Source of the DNA: Oikopleura dioica
Lineage: Eukaryota; Animalia; Chordata
Direction: 5' to 3'
Assembly: GCA_907165135.1 (NCBI GenBank)
Contig: OU015567.1
Span: 15,252,001 to 15,316,000, forward strand
Length of the DNA stretch: 64,000 bases
In this document: one piece after another, positions 45,225 to 55,402 of the stretch
How positions within the stretch are numbered: the first letter of the stretch is position 1
Layout: the number at the start of each line of letters is the position of its first letter
Program-made: the position numbers and the translations under genes
The notes under the pieces: model-generated
Database searches by the model: none
Told to the model about the DNA's origin: nothing
What the model saw: only the letters and a program-made list of their open reading frames with translations

Positions 45225-48015
45225 ATGTATAACAATGGGAGATTCATGAGTCGGCCGAATTTCCGCCGGCCGATGAAGAAGAAAAAGGGAAATGCCCTCG
45301 CTCACTTAGAGAAATTCACTGCTGTTCAGCAACTCGCCATATTTTGCCCAGATCTGAAAATAAACATCGAACAGCATCCCACAGAAGCGCAGTACTTCAA
45401 AGCGTCTTGCTTCATGCGCGGTCGACAAGTCGAAGCTTTTCACAAGGGCAAAAAGAATGCGAGGCAAGCACTGTGCTCAAAAATTATCAAGGTAGTTCTT
45501 GGGGAAAGCGTTTTAAAAATCTCTAGTAGCAATTCAAATTGCTCGACGATTGCCGGGGCGACGGTGCCTCTGAAAGCATGAGCATCGGCGTGCACCTCGA
45601 AGAAGAGCTTCCAAGCTGTGTTTCTTCTGCGAAAAGCGAGCCCACTTCATTCAAATCCGAGATCTCCAGCGAACAGCTCCAATCAATGGAAGTGATCATG
45701 CAGCAAGAAGTAAGCATCAAGTCCTTTTTGATCAGTCTTGATTTTTTGGCCAATTTTCTTTCAGTTAGACTCTGGCGCTACGCTTGCGTTAGTTTCAGAA
45801 TCTAACTGATAATTATTTTAGCCGGAAGTTAAGAATGAGCAAGCAGGGCCTCTTGCGAAAGGCTTGTGGTTGAATTTTTGTGAATCTTGATAAAAAAACC
45901 CTTTTTTTACTTTTTGTACCACTGTTGAAGCCCACGGTTATACCGGTTCTTACAACTCATCTTCTCTTCTCAATGATTTGGACAAAATGCCTGCCCAGCC
46001 GATGGAAACATCAAGCCAACCTTCATCTTCTAACTTGATGCCACCACCAGTTATTCATCGCGAAGAATACAGACTACCACCAGCTCGAAACGATAACACG
46101 AACAAAACGCCGATCTCTATTCTCCACGAAAGAATGAGGAAAGACGTGGACTTCCAATTCGCAGAAGCTGTCCGTGATATAAATACGGGTCTTTTCATGG
46201 TCCGAGTCGTATTCACTGATGGAATAATGTTTGACGGATTCGGCAGAAACAAGAAACTAGCAAAGCATCACGCCGCTGCTCTTGCGCTAGAAAGTAGATT
46301 TAACATGCCACAGTTTTCTCTTCCTGAAGGCGCTGGGCTCGGCAAAGCCGACCAGAAAAAAGCTGATATCGGTTTGCTAAAGGAGATTGATGTAATGATC
46401 GGGAAGGCGAAGAAAGAAAGCTTCCCCTCGCCGTCTAAAGATCCCTTGTACATCGACCCGGCGAAAATTATCTCGAGGGTAAATGAGCTTCATCCAGGCA
46501 TAGGCGCATTGGTCGTTACTACACAAGATGACGGAAAACAACCATTGTTCCATTGCTCTGTTACTGTAAATGGCACTGAATTCATGGGTCACGGACGAGC
46601 GAAGAAACAAGCCAAGTTTGACATGTGTTCGAAAATAATGCGAGATCTGCATGGCTACAACTTGAAGGCGCCCCGCGCGGGCCAAGAGATCTTCTGTTCT
46701 GAAGATATACAAACTAGAGGCCGTATAGCTGATAAGATGCAGGATGCCATTGTGATGAAGTTCAATGAACTCTGCGCGAAAGGAGTCGATCAGGTACTCT
46801 TTTCAAACCAAACTCGAATAACACTATTGATAGGATGCACATAAAATGAAAGTACTAGCTGGAATCTGTATGACAAGAGAGCCAGTTACTGATGAATCGG
46901 AAGAGATCCCGACGGTCATCGCTCTCGGAACGGGAACGAAAACCATGACTGGCGAGCACGTTTCTACCGTTGGAACGGCAGTTATTGACTGTCACGGTGA
47001 AATCATTAGTCGACGGAATTTGAAGCGATTCTTTTACTCCGAACTCCAAAAAATCGCCAATGGAGAGGGCCTCGCTTCCATTTTCGAAAGAAAGAATGGC
47101 CAAGGAAAATTCGCACTTAGAGACGGGATTAAATTCCATCTTTATATCAACACCACAACGTGTGGTGATGCGCGTGTTTTCAACCCGAATTCCAATGATG
47201 ATTTTGAAGATTTTAATAGTTCCAGAATGAGCCGAGGCATTCTTCGATCAAAGGTTCGATTAAGATTTCTTCTTAAGGAGTTTTAAGATTTTATTAGATC
47301 GAAAACGGGGAGGGAACAGTTCCGATTAACAAAGAAGAGTCAGTCTTAACATGGGATGGGATCATTGGAAACGCTCGACTGAAATCAATGAGTTGTTCTG
47401 ACAAAGTGATGCGCTGGAATGTTCTTGGTTTACAAGGAGCTCTGCTGAATCAACTCATCGAGCCGATCTATCTCTCTAGCATCTCTCTTGGAGGCCTGTA
47501 TCACCGTCAGCACTTCCCGAGAGCAATGTTTGAGCGAATTGAAAACATCGGCACTGATTACGCTTCCAGCTTCAGGCTCAACAAGCCAATGATGTCTCCG
47601 TGTGGAACTGAAGAGCCAAGAAGGGCCAAAAACACTCCTCCGTTCTCTATCAACTGGTGTATCATCGACGAAAAGCTTGAAAAAATCGATACAGTAACGG
47701 GTAAACAGATGACAAGAGAGCCTTCGAGATTATGTAAACGCGAGCTTTTTCAACTTTATCTGGTAATTAGTTTTCTTCTGCCTTTACACTTTTGAATATG
47801 CAATTGTTCAGCGAACCATCGAGCAGCTGGGCCCTGTGGTTGATAAATCCTACGCGCAGAAGATTCAAGAGATAAAAACGAAGAGCTACTTGGACGCTAA
47901 GAACTTATCAACAGAGTATCAAACTGTAAAGAATTCCCTCTACGAAAAGATGAAGGTTGCCAATGTTGGATATTGGGTGAAGAAACCTGAAGAGTTCGAG
48001 AGCTTTTCCATTTGA
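45225..48015 (+). CDS. ADAR: dsRNA-specific adenosine deaminase (three dsRBM-like domains plus deaminase)
   Basis: dsRBMs ending GKKNARQ, GRNKKLAKHHAA and GRAKKQAK; deaminase motifs GTGTK, DCHGEIISRR, TTCGDAR, IENGEGT, MSCSDKVMRWNVLGLQGALL, WVKKPEEFESF*. ADAR1 versus ADAR2 subclass not settled by eye. Confidence 0.93.
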
Positions 48016-48802: not shown

Positions 48803-51800
48803 ATGGATACTTCTTCTTACAAGTCATGTTACCAATCGCCCACTTTTACGTGGTTGCTTCAGACAATGGAAGAGAAAGCTGAAATAACCCTCACCGCAGG
48901 GTATCACCGCGTCAACTCGAGAGAGGTTGACCTCTTCCTTGATCCTGATTCAGACCCGGGATCGTCCAAGCCGCAGTCTACTTCCGTCAAATCGCAGGCG
49001 AGGGTTCGCAATTCAACCAACGATTTTATCAATTTTTTTTGCAAATTAATAATTTTGATTAAAAAACTTCTGGTCAGTTGCCGAACCATAATCAAAGACA
49101 GTTACAAAATTCAGCTGGCCAAAAGCGTACTACATTGGATCACTCATTACTGCCAGCAACACGGTAAACATTGTTTATTGAAGAATGTCTCCTAGTCATC
49201 ATTTAGTTCATCGCGTACGTTATCCGAGGCAAATCTGATGCTGTTCGAATTTTAAATCGTCTCACTGCCGCTCGAGTGCTCATCAAAGGCTTTGCTGGCC
49301 CAGTTTGCGACGTCGCCTTTGCCCACAGCGACTCGTCCCTCTTCGCCGCAATCGACGAAAGCGGCTCAATCTACATTTACTCAATCAGCCAGCCAGAAGG
49401 CAACTCGAAAAATATCGAGACCAAGCTTCTCTTCAAAGTTGAGAAGCGTAACACAATTCGAAATCCCTCCCACAGAATCGTCTGGTCGCCTAAAATTCAT
49501 CACTCCAAAAACGAAGACGAGCCCGAGCTAGTTGTCGAAACCAACTATCTCGCCGCAACGAGCATGAACGACATTGAAGTATTCAAGCTTCATCAAATCA
49601 TCAACGACGAAGTCACGAAGCAAGGAGAACCAGTGATCAAGAAAGACGATGATTTGCTCAATGGTTTTACTGGCTACGTTGGTTTCCAAGCCCACGCAAA
49701 TGTCATCACCGATGTTTCGATCGCCCCGGACGGCGCTGTCATGTGTACTTCATCCGAAGACGGCTATGTCCGATTCTGGAACACTGCTGGCCTCACCGAG
49801 GACAGGTCCGAGACTCCCAATACCCTGCACGAGTGGTACCCGCATGACAAAGCACCTGTTAATTGCATCAAATTCCTGGACAATTACCAAGTCTCAGACC
49901 CTGACGTGCCTTACTGGCGATTCCTGCTCACTGCGGCAAAACAAACTCAAGAGATTAAAATCTGGTGTACAGTCAAGTGGAATTGTCTGCAGTCGCTCTC
50001 CTTTCACATGAATCCAATGGTGCCGCTGAACAATTACAGTATTCCTCCGCAAATGAAATTGGCCGTCGATCAGACCGGAAACTACATCATGATTACCGAT
50101 ATCAATCGTCGAGTCTTGTACTGTCTCGAGTGCTGCTCCGAGTTTGGGGACGGCGACCAGGGCCCGTACAGCAACGGTGACTGCTCCATCCGATCCATCA
50201 ACGTCTGCCTCATTGATACTCCGATTCTGTCCTTCCATATGTCCGCTGTCAAAGGTAAGTGTCCTTGATCGCGAGCGTTAATAGGAAGTAATCGTTTAGG
50301 TATCACAATGATGTCGGCCGAAGAGCCCCCGCGTCGCCGTCGAGGAGTGCAAATCCAATCATTTACACTCCACCAGTCTAATCTTTACAAACTTCAAAGT
50401 CGAATCCTTCACCACAAGAGTTTCCTGACTGAAGTGCCCAATTCCGGCGGCGGCACACCTTCTGGCATTCTCTCTCCGCAGCGAGTCCTGTCTCCTGGTC
50501 TTTCTGGCGATGAGGTAAATTGAAAAATAGCTCAATTTAAACTTGCTCGCTCTATGACAAGGGCATGCGAAGCTGTCTGTGAGGAGTATCAGCTCCTGAC
50601 TGGTCTTTGCGGGGTGTTAACTCACCTTGTGAAATGTCAGCTCAATTTTTTCTCTCAACTACTGCAATCTTTAGCAAATCTACTCGCCCAAATCGAGACT
50701 ATCCGACAGTGAGGAGCCGAAGAAACGCTCGCGCTCTAAGACCCCTTCGCGACGCAATAAATCCAAATCGCCAGCGAGGAAGATGAGCCAAGGTTTGACT
50801 TTTTACTTTGAATAGATCTTTCTGTTGATTTTTCATAAACAAACTTTTTATACTGCAATTTAACCGCATAAATTTTATATTGAAAACCCGTAAAGAGTAC
50901 CATTCTAGAGCTTTAAATTCTAGAAAAAAATCGGTGCGCGCAGTATTCGCAAAAACACTGAGCGGTAGCCGCGTCTGGCCCGAGGGTTAATTTAGCTGAA
51001 AATCATTCAAATAAGCGCAATTATGAAATTCAAAGTTAACTTTGCTGGCTGCGATGTTTTTATCTTGAATTAGTATTTTTTCAATGAGAGGAAAATTTTC
51101 ACAAAAGTTGCAATTTTTTGAAACGCTTTCTTCAGACTCGAGCTTGGGCAGCGAGAAAAAATCGCCGCAAAAAGAGGAAAGCATGAATGACATGAGCTCA
51201 ATCATGGAAAAGCTGAAGAGTCAACCGAGAAGACAGAGCAACAGCTCGACCAGTACTAATGGTGCGATCGAGTCTACAACCGGCCTTGACGCTGACAAAC
51301 CATCAGAACCAGTCCAAACAGAGCCAGAAGCCCAAACAACAGCTTCGACTGAAATTCCAGTTAGTTTCGCATCTGACGAGGAGAAAAAGTCAAGTGGAGA
51401 CAGCAAATCAGAAGCGGACGAAAGTTCATCCGTTGGTACAAAGCCAGCGATTTTAGACAAATTGTTCGGCAAGAAAAGCGTTCCTGAACCAGAACCAGCA
51501 GCCAAATTCGAACAAGAGTCGCCAAAAGAGCCCGAACCAAAGCCAGAGAAGCAGCCTTCTCTTTTGGAAAGCATTTTCAGTCAAGCATCAAAGAAAGGCA
51601 AGGGAGTAGTTACTCTCGAAGACGATAGCACCTTGACGAACGTCACGCCCATCAACATGCAAGAAGAGAGCGAGTTGCACGAAGCAGAGCTCACTCCTCG
51701 CGAGACCGAACGGGAGGATCCGATGACAGCAATGAACAATCTCCTCCAGTCGCTCAAAGCGCAGACGGAAAACAAGACAAAGAGCCCTGAAGTGCCCCAT

Positions 51801-54800
51801 GAACCGCTGCCCGTTGCTTCTTCGTCAAACAAAGTCTCATTGATCTTTGGCGATCAGATTCTCAGCGACATAAATAGGATCATCGGCTCCATCAAGTACA
51901 ATTGCGAAATCCATATGCTTGATGGCGCGCTCACCAAAAACATCAAAAAGTATGTGACCGAGATGGGAACACGAAAAGACGCCGAAGTCGTTATCTTCCA
52001 TGTTGGCAGTAATGATATCTCCGCCAAAACAACAGAGAGCCAGTTCAACACTGATCTGATGCTGCTTTTCGGAGCCGCACGAAGTGCTTTTCCGAATGCG
52101 AAGCTTTGCATGAGCTCCGTTCTTCCAAGACACGACGAGTTCGCGTCAAAAGTATCCAAGTTCAATTCCGAAGCGCTGAAACAATGCGAAGTCTGCTTCA
52201 TCGAATTCTTGGACAATACGAAGATCTTCCAGAAAATCGACAACTTCGCTTATCAAAGTGATCCCAGCGAATGCCTAGCGCTCAATGAACACGGAAAGGA
52301 AAACCTGTGGATCCATTTCTTGTGCTTTATCGAAGATCATGTTCAAGAAGGAAGTTCTTACACCTCAGTCAAGTTTATTGAAGGTCCACGATTATCCCCG
52401 AAACTTCCAAAAGATGGAATTGAAGTACGAAACCTAACTCCTGTTTGCGAAGACAGAGATGAGCCTCCAGAAGTCGAGTCGGAAGACGAAGCACCAAAGG
52501 TACCAGAAGAACCGAGAGTCGAAGGCGATGGCTCGAAGAAACCAACCGCCGGACGAGATGGAAATGCGGACGGATCTCAGAGTCCATTGCCACCTACTCC
52601 TACTTCTCTTATCCCGACGCGTTCTCAGCGCATTCCAGCAGCTCCTGTTCAGACTCAACTTGTCAATGGAACTCCAAGCCAGAGTGACATAAGCACGCTT
52701 ATTATGATGATGAAGAAGCAATCTGAAGACATTGAATCCCTTAGAGCTGAAATGAGACGGAACCAGGTACTTATATTCGTTTAAATTATTGTTCTCGATA
52801 TTCTCCTTCTAGAGAAACAATCAGGAGAACATGACAAGACTAAATCAGGACATGCGAATTAACACGAGCCAAAGCAAATCAAACGGCCTTCCAAATTCGT
52901 CTATCGACGCCGTGTTACCCGGGTATTTGCATATCATAAAAGCATTGGGCTTATTTAACGCGCATATTTAGAATTCAAAAGAGAGTTGGAGATGCAGTCG
53001 AGCGCGCATCAGCGGAGAAGATCGAGCAGCTCAAGCCGACGATTCAAAAGCATATTGAGAGGGTTGTTCAGAACGCCACTCCTGGAATGATGCAGGCAAT
53101 GTCGAAGACAATGGAACAGACAGTCAAAAGTGTCTATCAAAGCTCAATTGAGAAAACATCGATACCTCAATTTGAAAAAGCAACACGCGAGATGTTCGAT
53201 CAGCTCTCTGTTGCTTTCAGCAGAGGCCAAGAGGAATATATATCCAGGTTAATATGTCTCATCGTTAAATTGTTTTAACAGTTGTCTTAGAATCGAAAAA
53301 ATGTTGGAAAAACGAGTGCGAGCCGAAGTGAGCTCAATCGAAGGCACAGTCGCCAACGCTGAGGATCCAAATGGACGTCTATCCGCAAACCTATCAGCCA
53401 ATATTTCCCAGACTCTACAGACGCAACTCCTATCAGATCTAAATAAGCAAATGGCGCGAAACGCACAGGAGCAAAACCAGTTTATGAACCGCACTTTCGC
53501 ACAACTACGACAACAATTGGTAATTTGCACTTATAATTTTGGAATCAAAACATGTTTGTAGATAATGGACATTCAAAAAATGCTCGACAACCACACAAAT
53601 CAGCTTGACAACAAAGTAGAAGATGCTATTGCTCGTGCTCAGACTCCAGCTCCTGTCCAAATCGACGAAAACGCGGATGTTCGAGACAAGGTACCTTCAC
53701 ATCTCCTCTCATTCTCTTCTAAAACTGTTCAGATTCGCGCATATTTGAATGGAGAAAAATATAATGAAGCATTTACGGCTGCGTTGATGCAGTCCAACTT
53801 GGGGCTTGTTGTGGACACGATGGAGTCGGTAGACTCTGCGAAAATCTTCAGCCCCGAAGCGGGGCCAAGCGGGACATGCCTTGAGGCGCGTGGTGATAAA
53901 TACAGTAAGGCAAATAGACAACCAAAAAGCTCTCAAGCAAAAGGAAACATTTCAAAGCCAAAAATCATCGCTTCCAATACTTCTACCTTTCCTAAACCTT
54001 CTCTTTCTCTTACTCCTTCTAACTCTTCCCAAGTCCGGCCTCGTTCGGCAAAGCTCATCAAATCTGAGTACAAGCTCAAGCCAAAGGCTCTTCCTGAGAG
54101 GCCCGCTGAAACTAACTACAATAATCTAACATCTGAAATAATCTCGTCCTGCGAGTCGTTCTACGACTCCGATCATTACTCGTCAAAACCGATCCAGAAT
54201 AAGTCTTTGGCTCGTAAAGATTCAGCTTTTCTGGACGATTCTGACATGGACATACGCTCGAGCACAGATACCAAGCTCAGTCGATTTTTTCTTTTGAATA
54301 AATATTAATTTACGTAGGCCTTGATCTTTTTCTCTCTCTCTCTCTTTCTTTTCCTCTTTCACTTCCTTTCTGCTTCAATAAAGACTACACGGCTTTCGTT
54401 TTTGGCAAAGTTTTAAAGGAAAAGTGAGTATGTCTGATCAAAAAATCACCACGCTGAAGCAAAATATTATTCTGTCTTTGATCTCCCAGCTGTCTCAGGA
54501 TCTTGGAACGAAGTCAGCGTTGAAGCTTACATATCTACAGGATGCTGTGTTGAGTCTTAATTATCTTCACCCTTCTTCGCAGCATTTCCCACAAGTTCTT
54601 GGTTTGTGTTATTTAAGTTTTTCATCGCTCTTATGTCTGATTAGGAGAGCTGCAGCAAAAGATCCAACAGTTCATCCAACTCAATCCCCGCGATCCAAAT
54701 GCCCGGACCTTCAAGATGCTGAACATGACCGTGGCTGGAATCGTCAAAGAAATCGCCGGAGCAAGTGTTCATTTGGACGTCTCCAGATCGAATATGGGAG

Positions 54801-54832
54801 CTGCTCCTGGTCGAAACGCAACGTTTTCATAA
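48803..54832 (+). CDS. EDC4: Enhancer of mRNA decapping 4 (Ge-1): WD40, long linker containing an SGNH-like domain, helical region, C-terminal domain
   Basis: VTKFSWPKAYYIGSLI, LIKGFAGPVCDVAFAH, APDGAVMCTSSEDGYVRFW, WRFLLTAAKQTQEIKIWC (WD40); IPQFEKATREMFDQL; YNEAFTAAL; NIILSLISQLSQDL...KLTYLQDAV (C-terminal domain). Confidence 0.93.
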
Positions 54833-55402
54833 AAAAAAATCACCTAAATCGAATCACGAAGTTATCCCCTATTGAAATCCAGTTCATTGCACCTTTCCCC
54901 TCTTCCCAAAAGTTAACTTATTTTCCCGGCGCCTACTATGCATCACCAACATTGTGAGCCAAAACCCTAAAAATTCACACAGCCACTCGAGCAATTTTCG
55001 CCACGGGCAATCCGTATATTTCAACTCTCACCTACTAGGCCACTTACTTGTTCATTATCATCATTTTACCTCCTCCTGACGTGAAAAAAAAACACGTTTA
55101 CCGCAAAAAAATACAGTCTCAGTTGTCTCTAGTCAGAATTGATGTGTTCAAATAATCAAATAAATAAACTGAGCTTCCAAACAAAAAAAAATATATAATT
55201 TTCACACTTGTTAATAATCTACTGTAAAATATAAACCGGTCAAAAATGCCGACCTTGACCATTATTTTGCTTTCCTGTTGTTTTTGTTTCCACTTTTTGG
55301 TACTTTTGCGTTCTTCAATAAATAAATTACAACACTGAGTTTTTTCACTAATTTAAAACATACGATCGTTTTCAACTTTCAAGTCAGTCGCATCTTTCAA
55401 GT

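Follow-up and report, generated by a model that had tools for sequence, protein, structure and literature searches.

The 64,000-nucleotide stretch of Oikopleura dioica DNA analysed here (contig OU015567.1 of assembly GCA_907165135.1, positions 15,252,001 to 15,316,000 of the forward strand; hereafter the window) carries an EDC4 gene in which a long exon, lying between the exons for the WD40 propeller and those for the C-terminal helical region, encodes a segment resembling the SGNH hydrolases. EDC4 is a platform for the assembly of DCP1, DCP2 and XRN1 in metazoan P-bodies, and its middle part is viewed as a disordered serine-rich linker. The published description of the human protein (PMC4005699) lists a WD40 domain, a linker rich in serine and an alpha-helical domain, and holds no SGNH module, in line with the original prediction for this stretch, which had been made from the letters alone and had placed in the gene a captured, catalytically dead domain foreign to human EDC4. 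Our full-text literature searches found no paper combining EDC4 with SGNH, nor Oikopleura with EDC4. The exons, numbered in window positions, are as follows; homology searches and Pfam scans were run exon by exon.

49207-50254, forward strand: EDC4 exon for the greater part of the Ge-1 WD40 propeller; open, with AG/GT splice sites; Pfam Ge1_WD40 (PF16529) at E 1.6e-59, 202 bits
50300-50514, forward strand: conserved exon after the WD40 region, in frame through the split codon GGT; AG/GT sites
50675-50792, forward strand: linker exon rich in Ser, Arg and Lys; open, with AG/GT sites, ending in phase 1 (G before the GT donor)
51136-52766, forward strand: long exon of 1.6 kb encoding a low-complexity linker, the SGNH-like domain and a second low-complexity linker; no stops, GT donor at 52767
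52813-52922, forward strand: short downstream exon; open, with AG/GT sites, exiting in phase 2
52972-53247, forward strand: opening exon of the helical C-terminal region, with a provisional 3' end; free of stops and brought back into frame by the split codon GGA
54424-54600, forward strand: EDC4_C exon; Pfam EDC4_C (PF21289) at E 5.3e-13, 49.2 bits against a cut-off of 27

A second EDC4_C match lies at 53565-54308 (E 4.3e-6). The six exons between 49207 and 53247 join in frame in a GT-AG model with compatible phases and zero stop codons. The polypyrimidine tract and AG acceptor at 51134-51135 fit the phase-1 donor of the linker exon, and this junction (50792/51136, with an intron of 343 nt) is the least certain of the model.

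The SGNH-like domain sits within an uninterrupted frame of 566 codons (51084-52784, forward strand), and the translation of 51831-52340 is exactly the 170-residue peptide in which the resemblance had first been noticed (SLIFGDQIL...LDGAL...VVIFHVGSNDI...LCMSSVLPR...FLDN...CLALNEHG). Pfam Lipase_GDSL_2 matches it at E 4.9e-5, under the gathering cut-off. Among all PDB sequences, the top phmmer match is the esterase of the open reading frame 1 protein (ORF1p) of the zebrafish retrotransposon ZfL2-1 (4c1b, E 1.4e-4), and a profile made from the EDC4 relatives alone (alignment A2, which holds EDC4 orthologues only) finds the same entry at E 1.3e-6 as its sole PDB match at E<=1. Searched exhaustively with HMMER, a set of 1.84 billion representative proteins yielded 141 matches at E<=1e-3, and among look-alikes retrieved by a language model eukaryotic GDSL clusters (score 0.95-0.96) rank above bacterial ones (0.87). 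By these comparisons, the resemblance of the segment to SGNH proteins is far above chance. AlphaFold was uninformative from the single sequence (pLDDT 42); given alignment A1, which holds 64 sequences including 57 distant ORF1-like homologues, it returned a model with pLDDT 92.1, pTM 0.89 and the alternating strand-helix order of SGNH hydrolases, and Foldseek matched this model to many solved SGNH esterases with probability 1.0. The predicted model has the three-layer alpha/beta/alpha arrangement with a five-stranded parallel sheet, so that the fold read from the letters was recovered. Against 4c1b itself the model gave a low TM-score and a high root-mean-square deviation, which fits the published observation that the ZfL2-1 esterase formed crystals in which its two half-domains are separated (PMC3905857).

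The positions that decide on catalysis, and those that mark the kinship of the domain, are these:

51849-51857, forward strand: block I, GDQ, with the nucleophile Ser replaced by Gln (codon 51855-51857); Ser in 56 of the 57 ORF1-like homologues
51924-51926, forward strand: block II Gly, kept, at the oxyanion-hole position of active SGNH enzymes; near-invariant in A1 (G37)
51996-52016, forward strand: block III, FHVGSND, with Gly and Asn kept; each present in 57 of 57 homologues (G64, N66)
52113-52115, forward strand: first Ser of MSSVLP, aligned with S228, a transposon-specific residue of ZfL2-1; present in 53 of 57 homologues and in the EDC4 relatives covering the column
52275-52295, forward strand: block V remnant, LALNEHG, with the catalytic His replaced by Ala (codon 52278-52280); His in 56 of 57 homologues

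An SGNH enzyme would be expected to hold all four signature residues; here the block I Ser and the block V His are absent, and the block II Gly and the block III Asn are present. Both substitutions named in the original prediction are real, because the columns in which they fall are otherwise occupied almost throughout by Ser and by His. The EDC4 relatives depart from the enzyme at the same two columns, with Glu (GDE) at the first in all five relatives that cover it and Gln at the second, and they likewise keep the block II Gly (A1) and both the Gly and the Asn of block III. Since the Ser nucleophile and the His base are lacking, the domain cannot act as a Ser-His hydrolase, and hydrolysis of this type is, judging from these residues, excluded for EDC4. 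In the ZfL2-1 study, S143A, S143Y, S143Q and H282S each abolish hydrolysis (PMC3905857), and the Gln of the window is thus one of the very substitutions reported there (S143Q). The block III His (51999-52001), found in 51 of the 57 homologues and in all EDC4 relatives covering the column, corresponds to H191 of ZfL2-1; this residue and S228 were mapped by residue offset anchored on S143 in the 4c1b alignment. The two are described as conserved solely among transposon-encoded esterases, where they share a buried hydrogen bond (Schneider et al. 2013, PMC3905857), and the EDC4 domain carries both members of this pair.

Related loci indicate that the domain is a long-standing part of this gene. 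Orthologue fragments sharing 47-71% identity with the window (P0001-P0011, P0014 and P0063) come from marine metagenome contigs. One of these, the 25-kb contig L008, carries in order ADAR (dsrm and A_deamin domains), Ge1_WD40, the SGNH exon and EDC4_C. In another, L005, EDC4_C comes after the SGNH exon, and tblastx shows both contigs to be collinear with the window. Because order and collinearity match, we regard these fragments as orthologous EDC4 loci of diverged related species. In tblastx the exon at 50300-50514 is 76-100% identical to L008, and the exon at 52972-53247 is conserved in L005 and L008. The L008 homologue of the linker exon also ends in phase 1 (AGC G followed by GTAAGT), and the long exon of L008 has a polypyrimidine tract and AG acceptor which restore the same frame a few codons ahead of the conserved stretch. 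In the window (47002-48015) and in L008 (3742-5728) alike, an ADAR-like gene (dsrm, A_deamin) directly precedes EDC4 in the same orientation, and the ADAR-EDC4 synteny has been kept despite saturated synonymous divergence.

Within the domain, the relatives have introns at differing sites, with the reading frame resuming after each one. L008 has an intron after EGK(LR); L023 has one after TEQ, where L022, 93% identical to it in exons, has none; further intron positions were judged from the ends of fragments. Such a pattern indicates that introns have been gained or lost inside the domain since the species split, as is the case for a long-resident coding exon of a spliced gene. The L023 intron (about 250 nt, L023:~1560-1810) has GA...AG as its only frame-preserving boundaries, and is apparently non-canonical and a recent gain or loss.

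The substitution data point in the same direction. Synonymous divergence between the window and L008 has reached saturation (proportion of synonymous differences, pS, 0.95), and the non-synonymous divergence (dN) is 0.29 in the domain versus 0.58 in the linker that precedes it within the exon; identity to L008 is 65% in the SGNH-like domain, ~40% in the linkers, ~57% in the WD40 pieces and 65% in EDC4_C. Between L022 and L023, the 67 domain codons compared hold 10 synonymous and 0 non-synonymous differences (synonymous divergence, dS, 0.32), and the adjoining linker 8 synonymous and 2 non-synonymous ones. The rates therefore bear out constraint on the domain, and indicate strong purifying selection dating from before these species diverged. 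In the genome (64 Mb, 19 contigs searched) the domain locus is single-copy, with the closest paralogue 28% identical in a single-sequence search. Conservation is highest in the fold and in the loops of the old cleft: IFGD(E/Q), HML(E/D)GA.TKNI, IFHVG(S/T)ND, LPRHDE(F/Y) and DP(S/T)EC (A2). The linker, though it evolves fast elsewhere, also holds short motifs conserved across the relatives, namely MSSI(M/I)EKLKSQ (window 51186-51221), PSLLESIF..ASKKGKGVV (51543-51599) and, just ahead of the domain, D.M..LL.NLK.QT (51723-51764), which may be linear motifs or a short helix.

Taken at the level of the locus, the presence of a conserved, dead SGNH domain of the ORF1p type in EDC4 is, in our judgement, very likely, and its presence in the EDC4 protein itself is likely. 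As the best overall explanation of the data we favour, with some reserve, a dead transposon-type SGNH module acting as a pseudoenzyme within EDC4. On this reading, a folded domain would be inserted in the EDC4 linker between the WD40 propeller and the C-terminal helical domain; being acidic, it would no longer bind anionic lipids or RNA through charge, and would serve as a rigid docking or spacing module recruiting a protein partner within the decapping complex. Alternatively, the old cleft might hold a small ligand. On the evidence of its residues and of its conservation, the domain appears domesticated and non-enzymatic. The co-option of a domain as a pseudoenzyme is a known type of event; if the domain is conserved in EDC4, however, this would be the first case found in which a core factor of mRNA decay has taken up and domesticated an esterase domain of the ORF1p type. 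Because selection in EDC4 would have preserved the non-catalytic contacts, the domain may also help show what the esterase of ORF1 in long interspersed nuclear elements (LINEs), still puzzling, binds.

Where the domain came from is the point on which the favoured explanation has its strongest competitor. The sequence comparisons place it clearly in the retrotransposon ORF1p-esterase/Texim branch of the SGNH superfamily. Its distant homologues, 20-35% identical, typically have a Lys-rich stretch followed by xIxGDSxxK...HVGTND...SSIxPR...LHLNxxG, and two of them, P0043 and P0019, lie directly upstream of long open reading frames with Exo_endo_phos and RVT_1 domains (plus RNase_H); because ORF2s with endonuclease and reverse transcriptase directly follow them, these two are LINE ORF1 proteins. 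A few long matches are bacterial multi-domain proteins or carry other domains, and Ge1_WD40 was found in none of the long representative matches checked, full-length EDC4 relatives falling outside the length window of the search. With the ORF1p esterases (ZfL2-1, 4c1b; CR1/L2, RTE and Penelope-like elements), which are the closest by sequence, the EDC4 domain shares the SGNH fold over some 170 residues, the pair of the His191/Ser228 type, the block II Gly and the block III Asn. It differs from them in that Ser143 has become Gln or Glu and His282 Ala or Gln, in that it is acidic and not basic, and in its setting, as it has EDC4 exons for neighbours in place of an adjoining ORF2 with endonuclease and reverse transcriptase, and shows no recognisable coiled coil upstream. 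The closest relative by descent is the LINE ORF1p esterase, from which the domain departs in three defining features: ORF1 context, active site and basic charge.

The original prediction of a possible retrotransposon derivation is thus upheld as far as the nearest relatives and the His/Ser pair are concerned; direct capture from a LINE, however, is called into question by intron-bearing SGNH genes of the same type in this genome. An origin by exon shuffling or duplication from a Texim-like SGNH gene, belonging to the host or borne by a DNA transposon, has in our view a substantial chance of being correct, somewhat below even; in one variant, the same event possibly also supplied the SMG6-like gene discussed below. 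Texim genes are cellular, intron-bearing kin of the CR1 ORF1 esterases without a reverse transcriptase, and have been reported from Oikopleura (one), amphioxus, sea urchin and fish (PMC4021074). A profile search found at least 7 further loci of the same SGNH type in the genome, several with introns together with intact GDS / HVGTN(D/N) / H motifs; no reverse transcriptase, endonuclease or other LINE remnant flanks the domain in the open reading frame list and Pfam scan of the window; in a tree of a 90-column single-exon region, the EDC4 clade (support 99) is nested among ORF1-like sequences with no resolved sister; and exon C of the SMG6-like copy gets a higher score with the EDC4 domains than with most of the ORF1-like matches. 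On the other hand, the LINE ORF1 proteins P0019 and P0043 are among the nearest non-orthologous relatives, the sole sequence match of solved structure is a LINE ORF1p (4c1b), and the best genomic paralogue is, as said, a distant one. The donor may be a LINE, another mobile element or a host gene. A PAF-AH-type or bacterial SGNH origin was also considered and rejected, as the profile of the EDC4 relatives found zero PDB sequence support for it at E<=1; the PAF-AH Ib alpha subunits (1wab, 1fxw, 1vyh) are active enzymes, and none gave a sequence match at that level.

Among the further loci of ORF1p/Texim type, L013, L014, L015, L018 and L020 (G000 C2:2719667, C5:14596304, C4:10081301, C1:12980960 and C5:13538654, respectively) are interrupted by introns and have mostly intact motifs; in L015 the N-terminus is rich in Arg and Ser and the tail is long and acidic. 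L012 and L016 (G000 C3:2862797 and C3:2135092) are near-identical divergent SGNH-like open reading frames with MVGTND and without the transposon-type His; two copies so nearly identical resemble a repeated element. With the Texim genes, of which type this genome holds several loci, the EDC4 domain has in common the SGNH fold and the relation to the CR1 ORF1 esterase; Texim proteins, however, are stand-alone predicted esterases with intact motifs, whereas the EDC4 domain is dead and forms part of a large scaffold protein.

As for function, the acidity of the domain is what most separates it from its relatives. Its net charge is -6 and its isoelectric point (pI) 5.5, with the EDC4 relatives at pI 5.0-7.0, whereas basic values prevail among the 57 ORF1-like esterases, with a median net charge of +6, a median pI of 9.24 and 88% of them above pI 8. 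Of the RNA- or lipid-binding module originally proposed, the non-enzymatic part has stood, given the loss of Ser and His, and the binding part has not fared as well on account of this charge. We think it unlikely that the domain works like OSK of Oskar, tethering EDC4 or P-bodies to RNA or membranes. OSK is the closest analogue in logic, being likewise a dead SGNH fold within the organiser of a membraneless ribonucleoprotein (RNP) granule; it binds RNA and is basic. The Pfam OSK profile (PF17182) matches the EDC4 domain at 12.4 bits and E 0.09, far under the cut-off of 27, so that membership of the OSK family finds no support; moreover, the EDC4 domain comes without a LOTUS domain, is of the transposon/Texim type and is acidic. 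OSK is reported to be bacterial in origin (PMC7250577). The ZfL2-1 report states that this esterase binds phosphatidic acid, phosphoinositides and liposomes, that the active site is not required and mutants still bind, that binding is put down to positive surface charge, and that there is no binding to oligo(A) RNA (PMC3905857). The cleft-lining Gly and Asn, which are kept, would suit a binding module; the Gln or Glu at the nucleophile position, however, may fill the pocket. Because the domain is acidic where the ORF1p esterases are basic, binding of RNA or anionic membranes driven by charge is disfavoured, and a protein-docking pseudoenzyme is favoured for the same reason, although docking as such we would put forward tentatively, at rather less than an even chance. 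A homodimer complex prediction of the domain scored 0.00 and was returned without a verdict, and is evidence neither way.

With the pseudoenzyme in EDC4 there would be a second independent example, beside OSK, of an RNP-granule scaffold that has recruited a dead SGNH fold. L1TD1 is a mammalian host gene that arose from LINE-1 ORF1 and was domesticated into cytoplasmic mRNP or P-body biology; it differs in having its origin in an ORF1p of the RRM/CTD type, not SGNH, and in being a stand-alone RNA-binding protein.

Several points weigh against a docking pseudoenzyme built into EDC4. The structural model was built on an alignment made up mostly of active esterases; net charge is a crude proxy for the surface, on which a local basic patch or a ligand pocket may exist; and the putative docking module has no known partner in our analysis. 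At the level of the gene, no junction-spanning reads were seen for the exons of interest in three oligo-dT runs from a diverged lineage and one metatranscriptome, and the interval 50793-51135 is unusually long for an intron of this genome (343 nt in the window, ~1.1 kb in L008), with an ATG at 51084. Read mapping covered 5901 bases (49300-55200), where the species-labelled runs mostly match partially and are only 90-99% alike, from which we conclude that these 2026 RNA runs stem from a clearly diverged lineage. One or two reads fall on 51664-52057, at the boundary between linker and domain, with a depth like that of other EDC4 exons, and one 168-nt metatranscriptome contig falls on 52469-52636. 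The in-frame membership in EDC4 that had been predicted is supported by the canonical six-exon splice model and the synteny conserved in relatives; inclusion of the domain in the mRNA and its translation as part of EDC4 are what we infer.

Because of the long upstream interval and the ATG at 51084, some weight must go to a separate downstream gene, in which the long frame at 51084-52784 with its SGNH-like domain would begin anew at that ATG, for example as an operonic, split-off EDC4 C-terminal gene. The ATG near the start of the frame recurs in L008 (at 10001), and junction reads would indeed be missing in such a case. We nevertheless hold this arrangement to be improbable, as two species with saturated synonymous sites both keep the phase-1 donor and the matching polypyrimidine tract and AG acceptor, the residues between ATG and acceptor are unconserved with conservation starting right after the acceptor, and the exon is joined in frame downstream to the helical and EDC4_C exons of EDC4. 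Because of those in-frame downstream exons, the domain would, even as part of a separate gene, still be fused to the C-terminal half of EDC4. That the domain is a decaying, functionless transposon fragment in a chance open frame, as the loss of its catalytic residues might suggest, is a reading we reject and consider excluded for practical purposes, given the single-copy locus, the 47-66% identity kept across several species, a dN half that of the flanking linker, the absence of non-synonymous against 10 synonymous differences between L022 and L023, and the frames preserved across lineage-specific introns.

Downstream of EDC4, many reads leave out 78 bases at 54957/55036, and the ends of the skipped stretch are GC..AC.

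A second dead SGNH-like domain is encoded elsewhere in the genome (L002:599-1823; G000:C2, about 2294450-2295675), in four exons within a helical region, and first appeared in the search of the species' own genome as a weak second match. Its exons match the A1 profile collinearly at positions 5-50, 54-87, 89-141 (E 2.8e-11) and 148-164. Because its motifs read GDG, HVGSED and LSDKG, it lacks Ser and His as well as the block III Asn. Exons upstream in the same gene match EST1 (28.7 bits, cut-off 25) and EST1_DNA_bind (34.2 bits, cut-off 22), and the gene context was taken from L007:6283-8130 and L021:131-352; these domains assign it to the SMG5/6/7 family, and it is probably SMG6. A VVPDTN...ELEGL stretch downstream resembles a PIN domain, and Pfam gave no PIN match for it. 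Most ORF1-like matches give the largest SGNH exon of the gene a lower score than the EDC4 domains do, in what is a biased match set, and the tree does not resolve how the EDC4 and SMG6-like domains are related.

This independently dead copy suggests a function shared among the mRNA-decay machines of this lineage. A more specific proposal, that the EDC4 and SMG6-like modules are a matched domesticated pair, we regard as a distinctly long shot. In one version, the two modules would bind each other and provide a new physical bridge between nonsense-mediated decay and decapping in a gene-poor lineage; in the other, they would act as decoys that sense the basic SGNH proteins of SGNH-bearing transposons and route their RNPs to mRNA decay, and the pair would then be a transposon-derived sensor inside the core decay machinery. 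A tRNA-Glu(TTC) gene (L002:1258-1329) sits in an intron splitting the SGNH domain of the SMG6-like gene.

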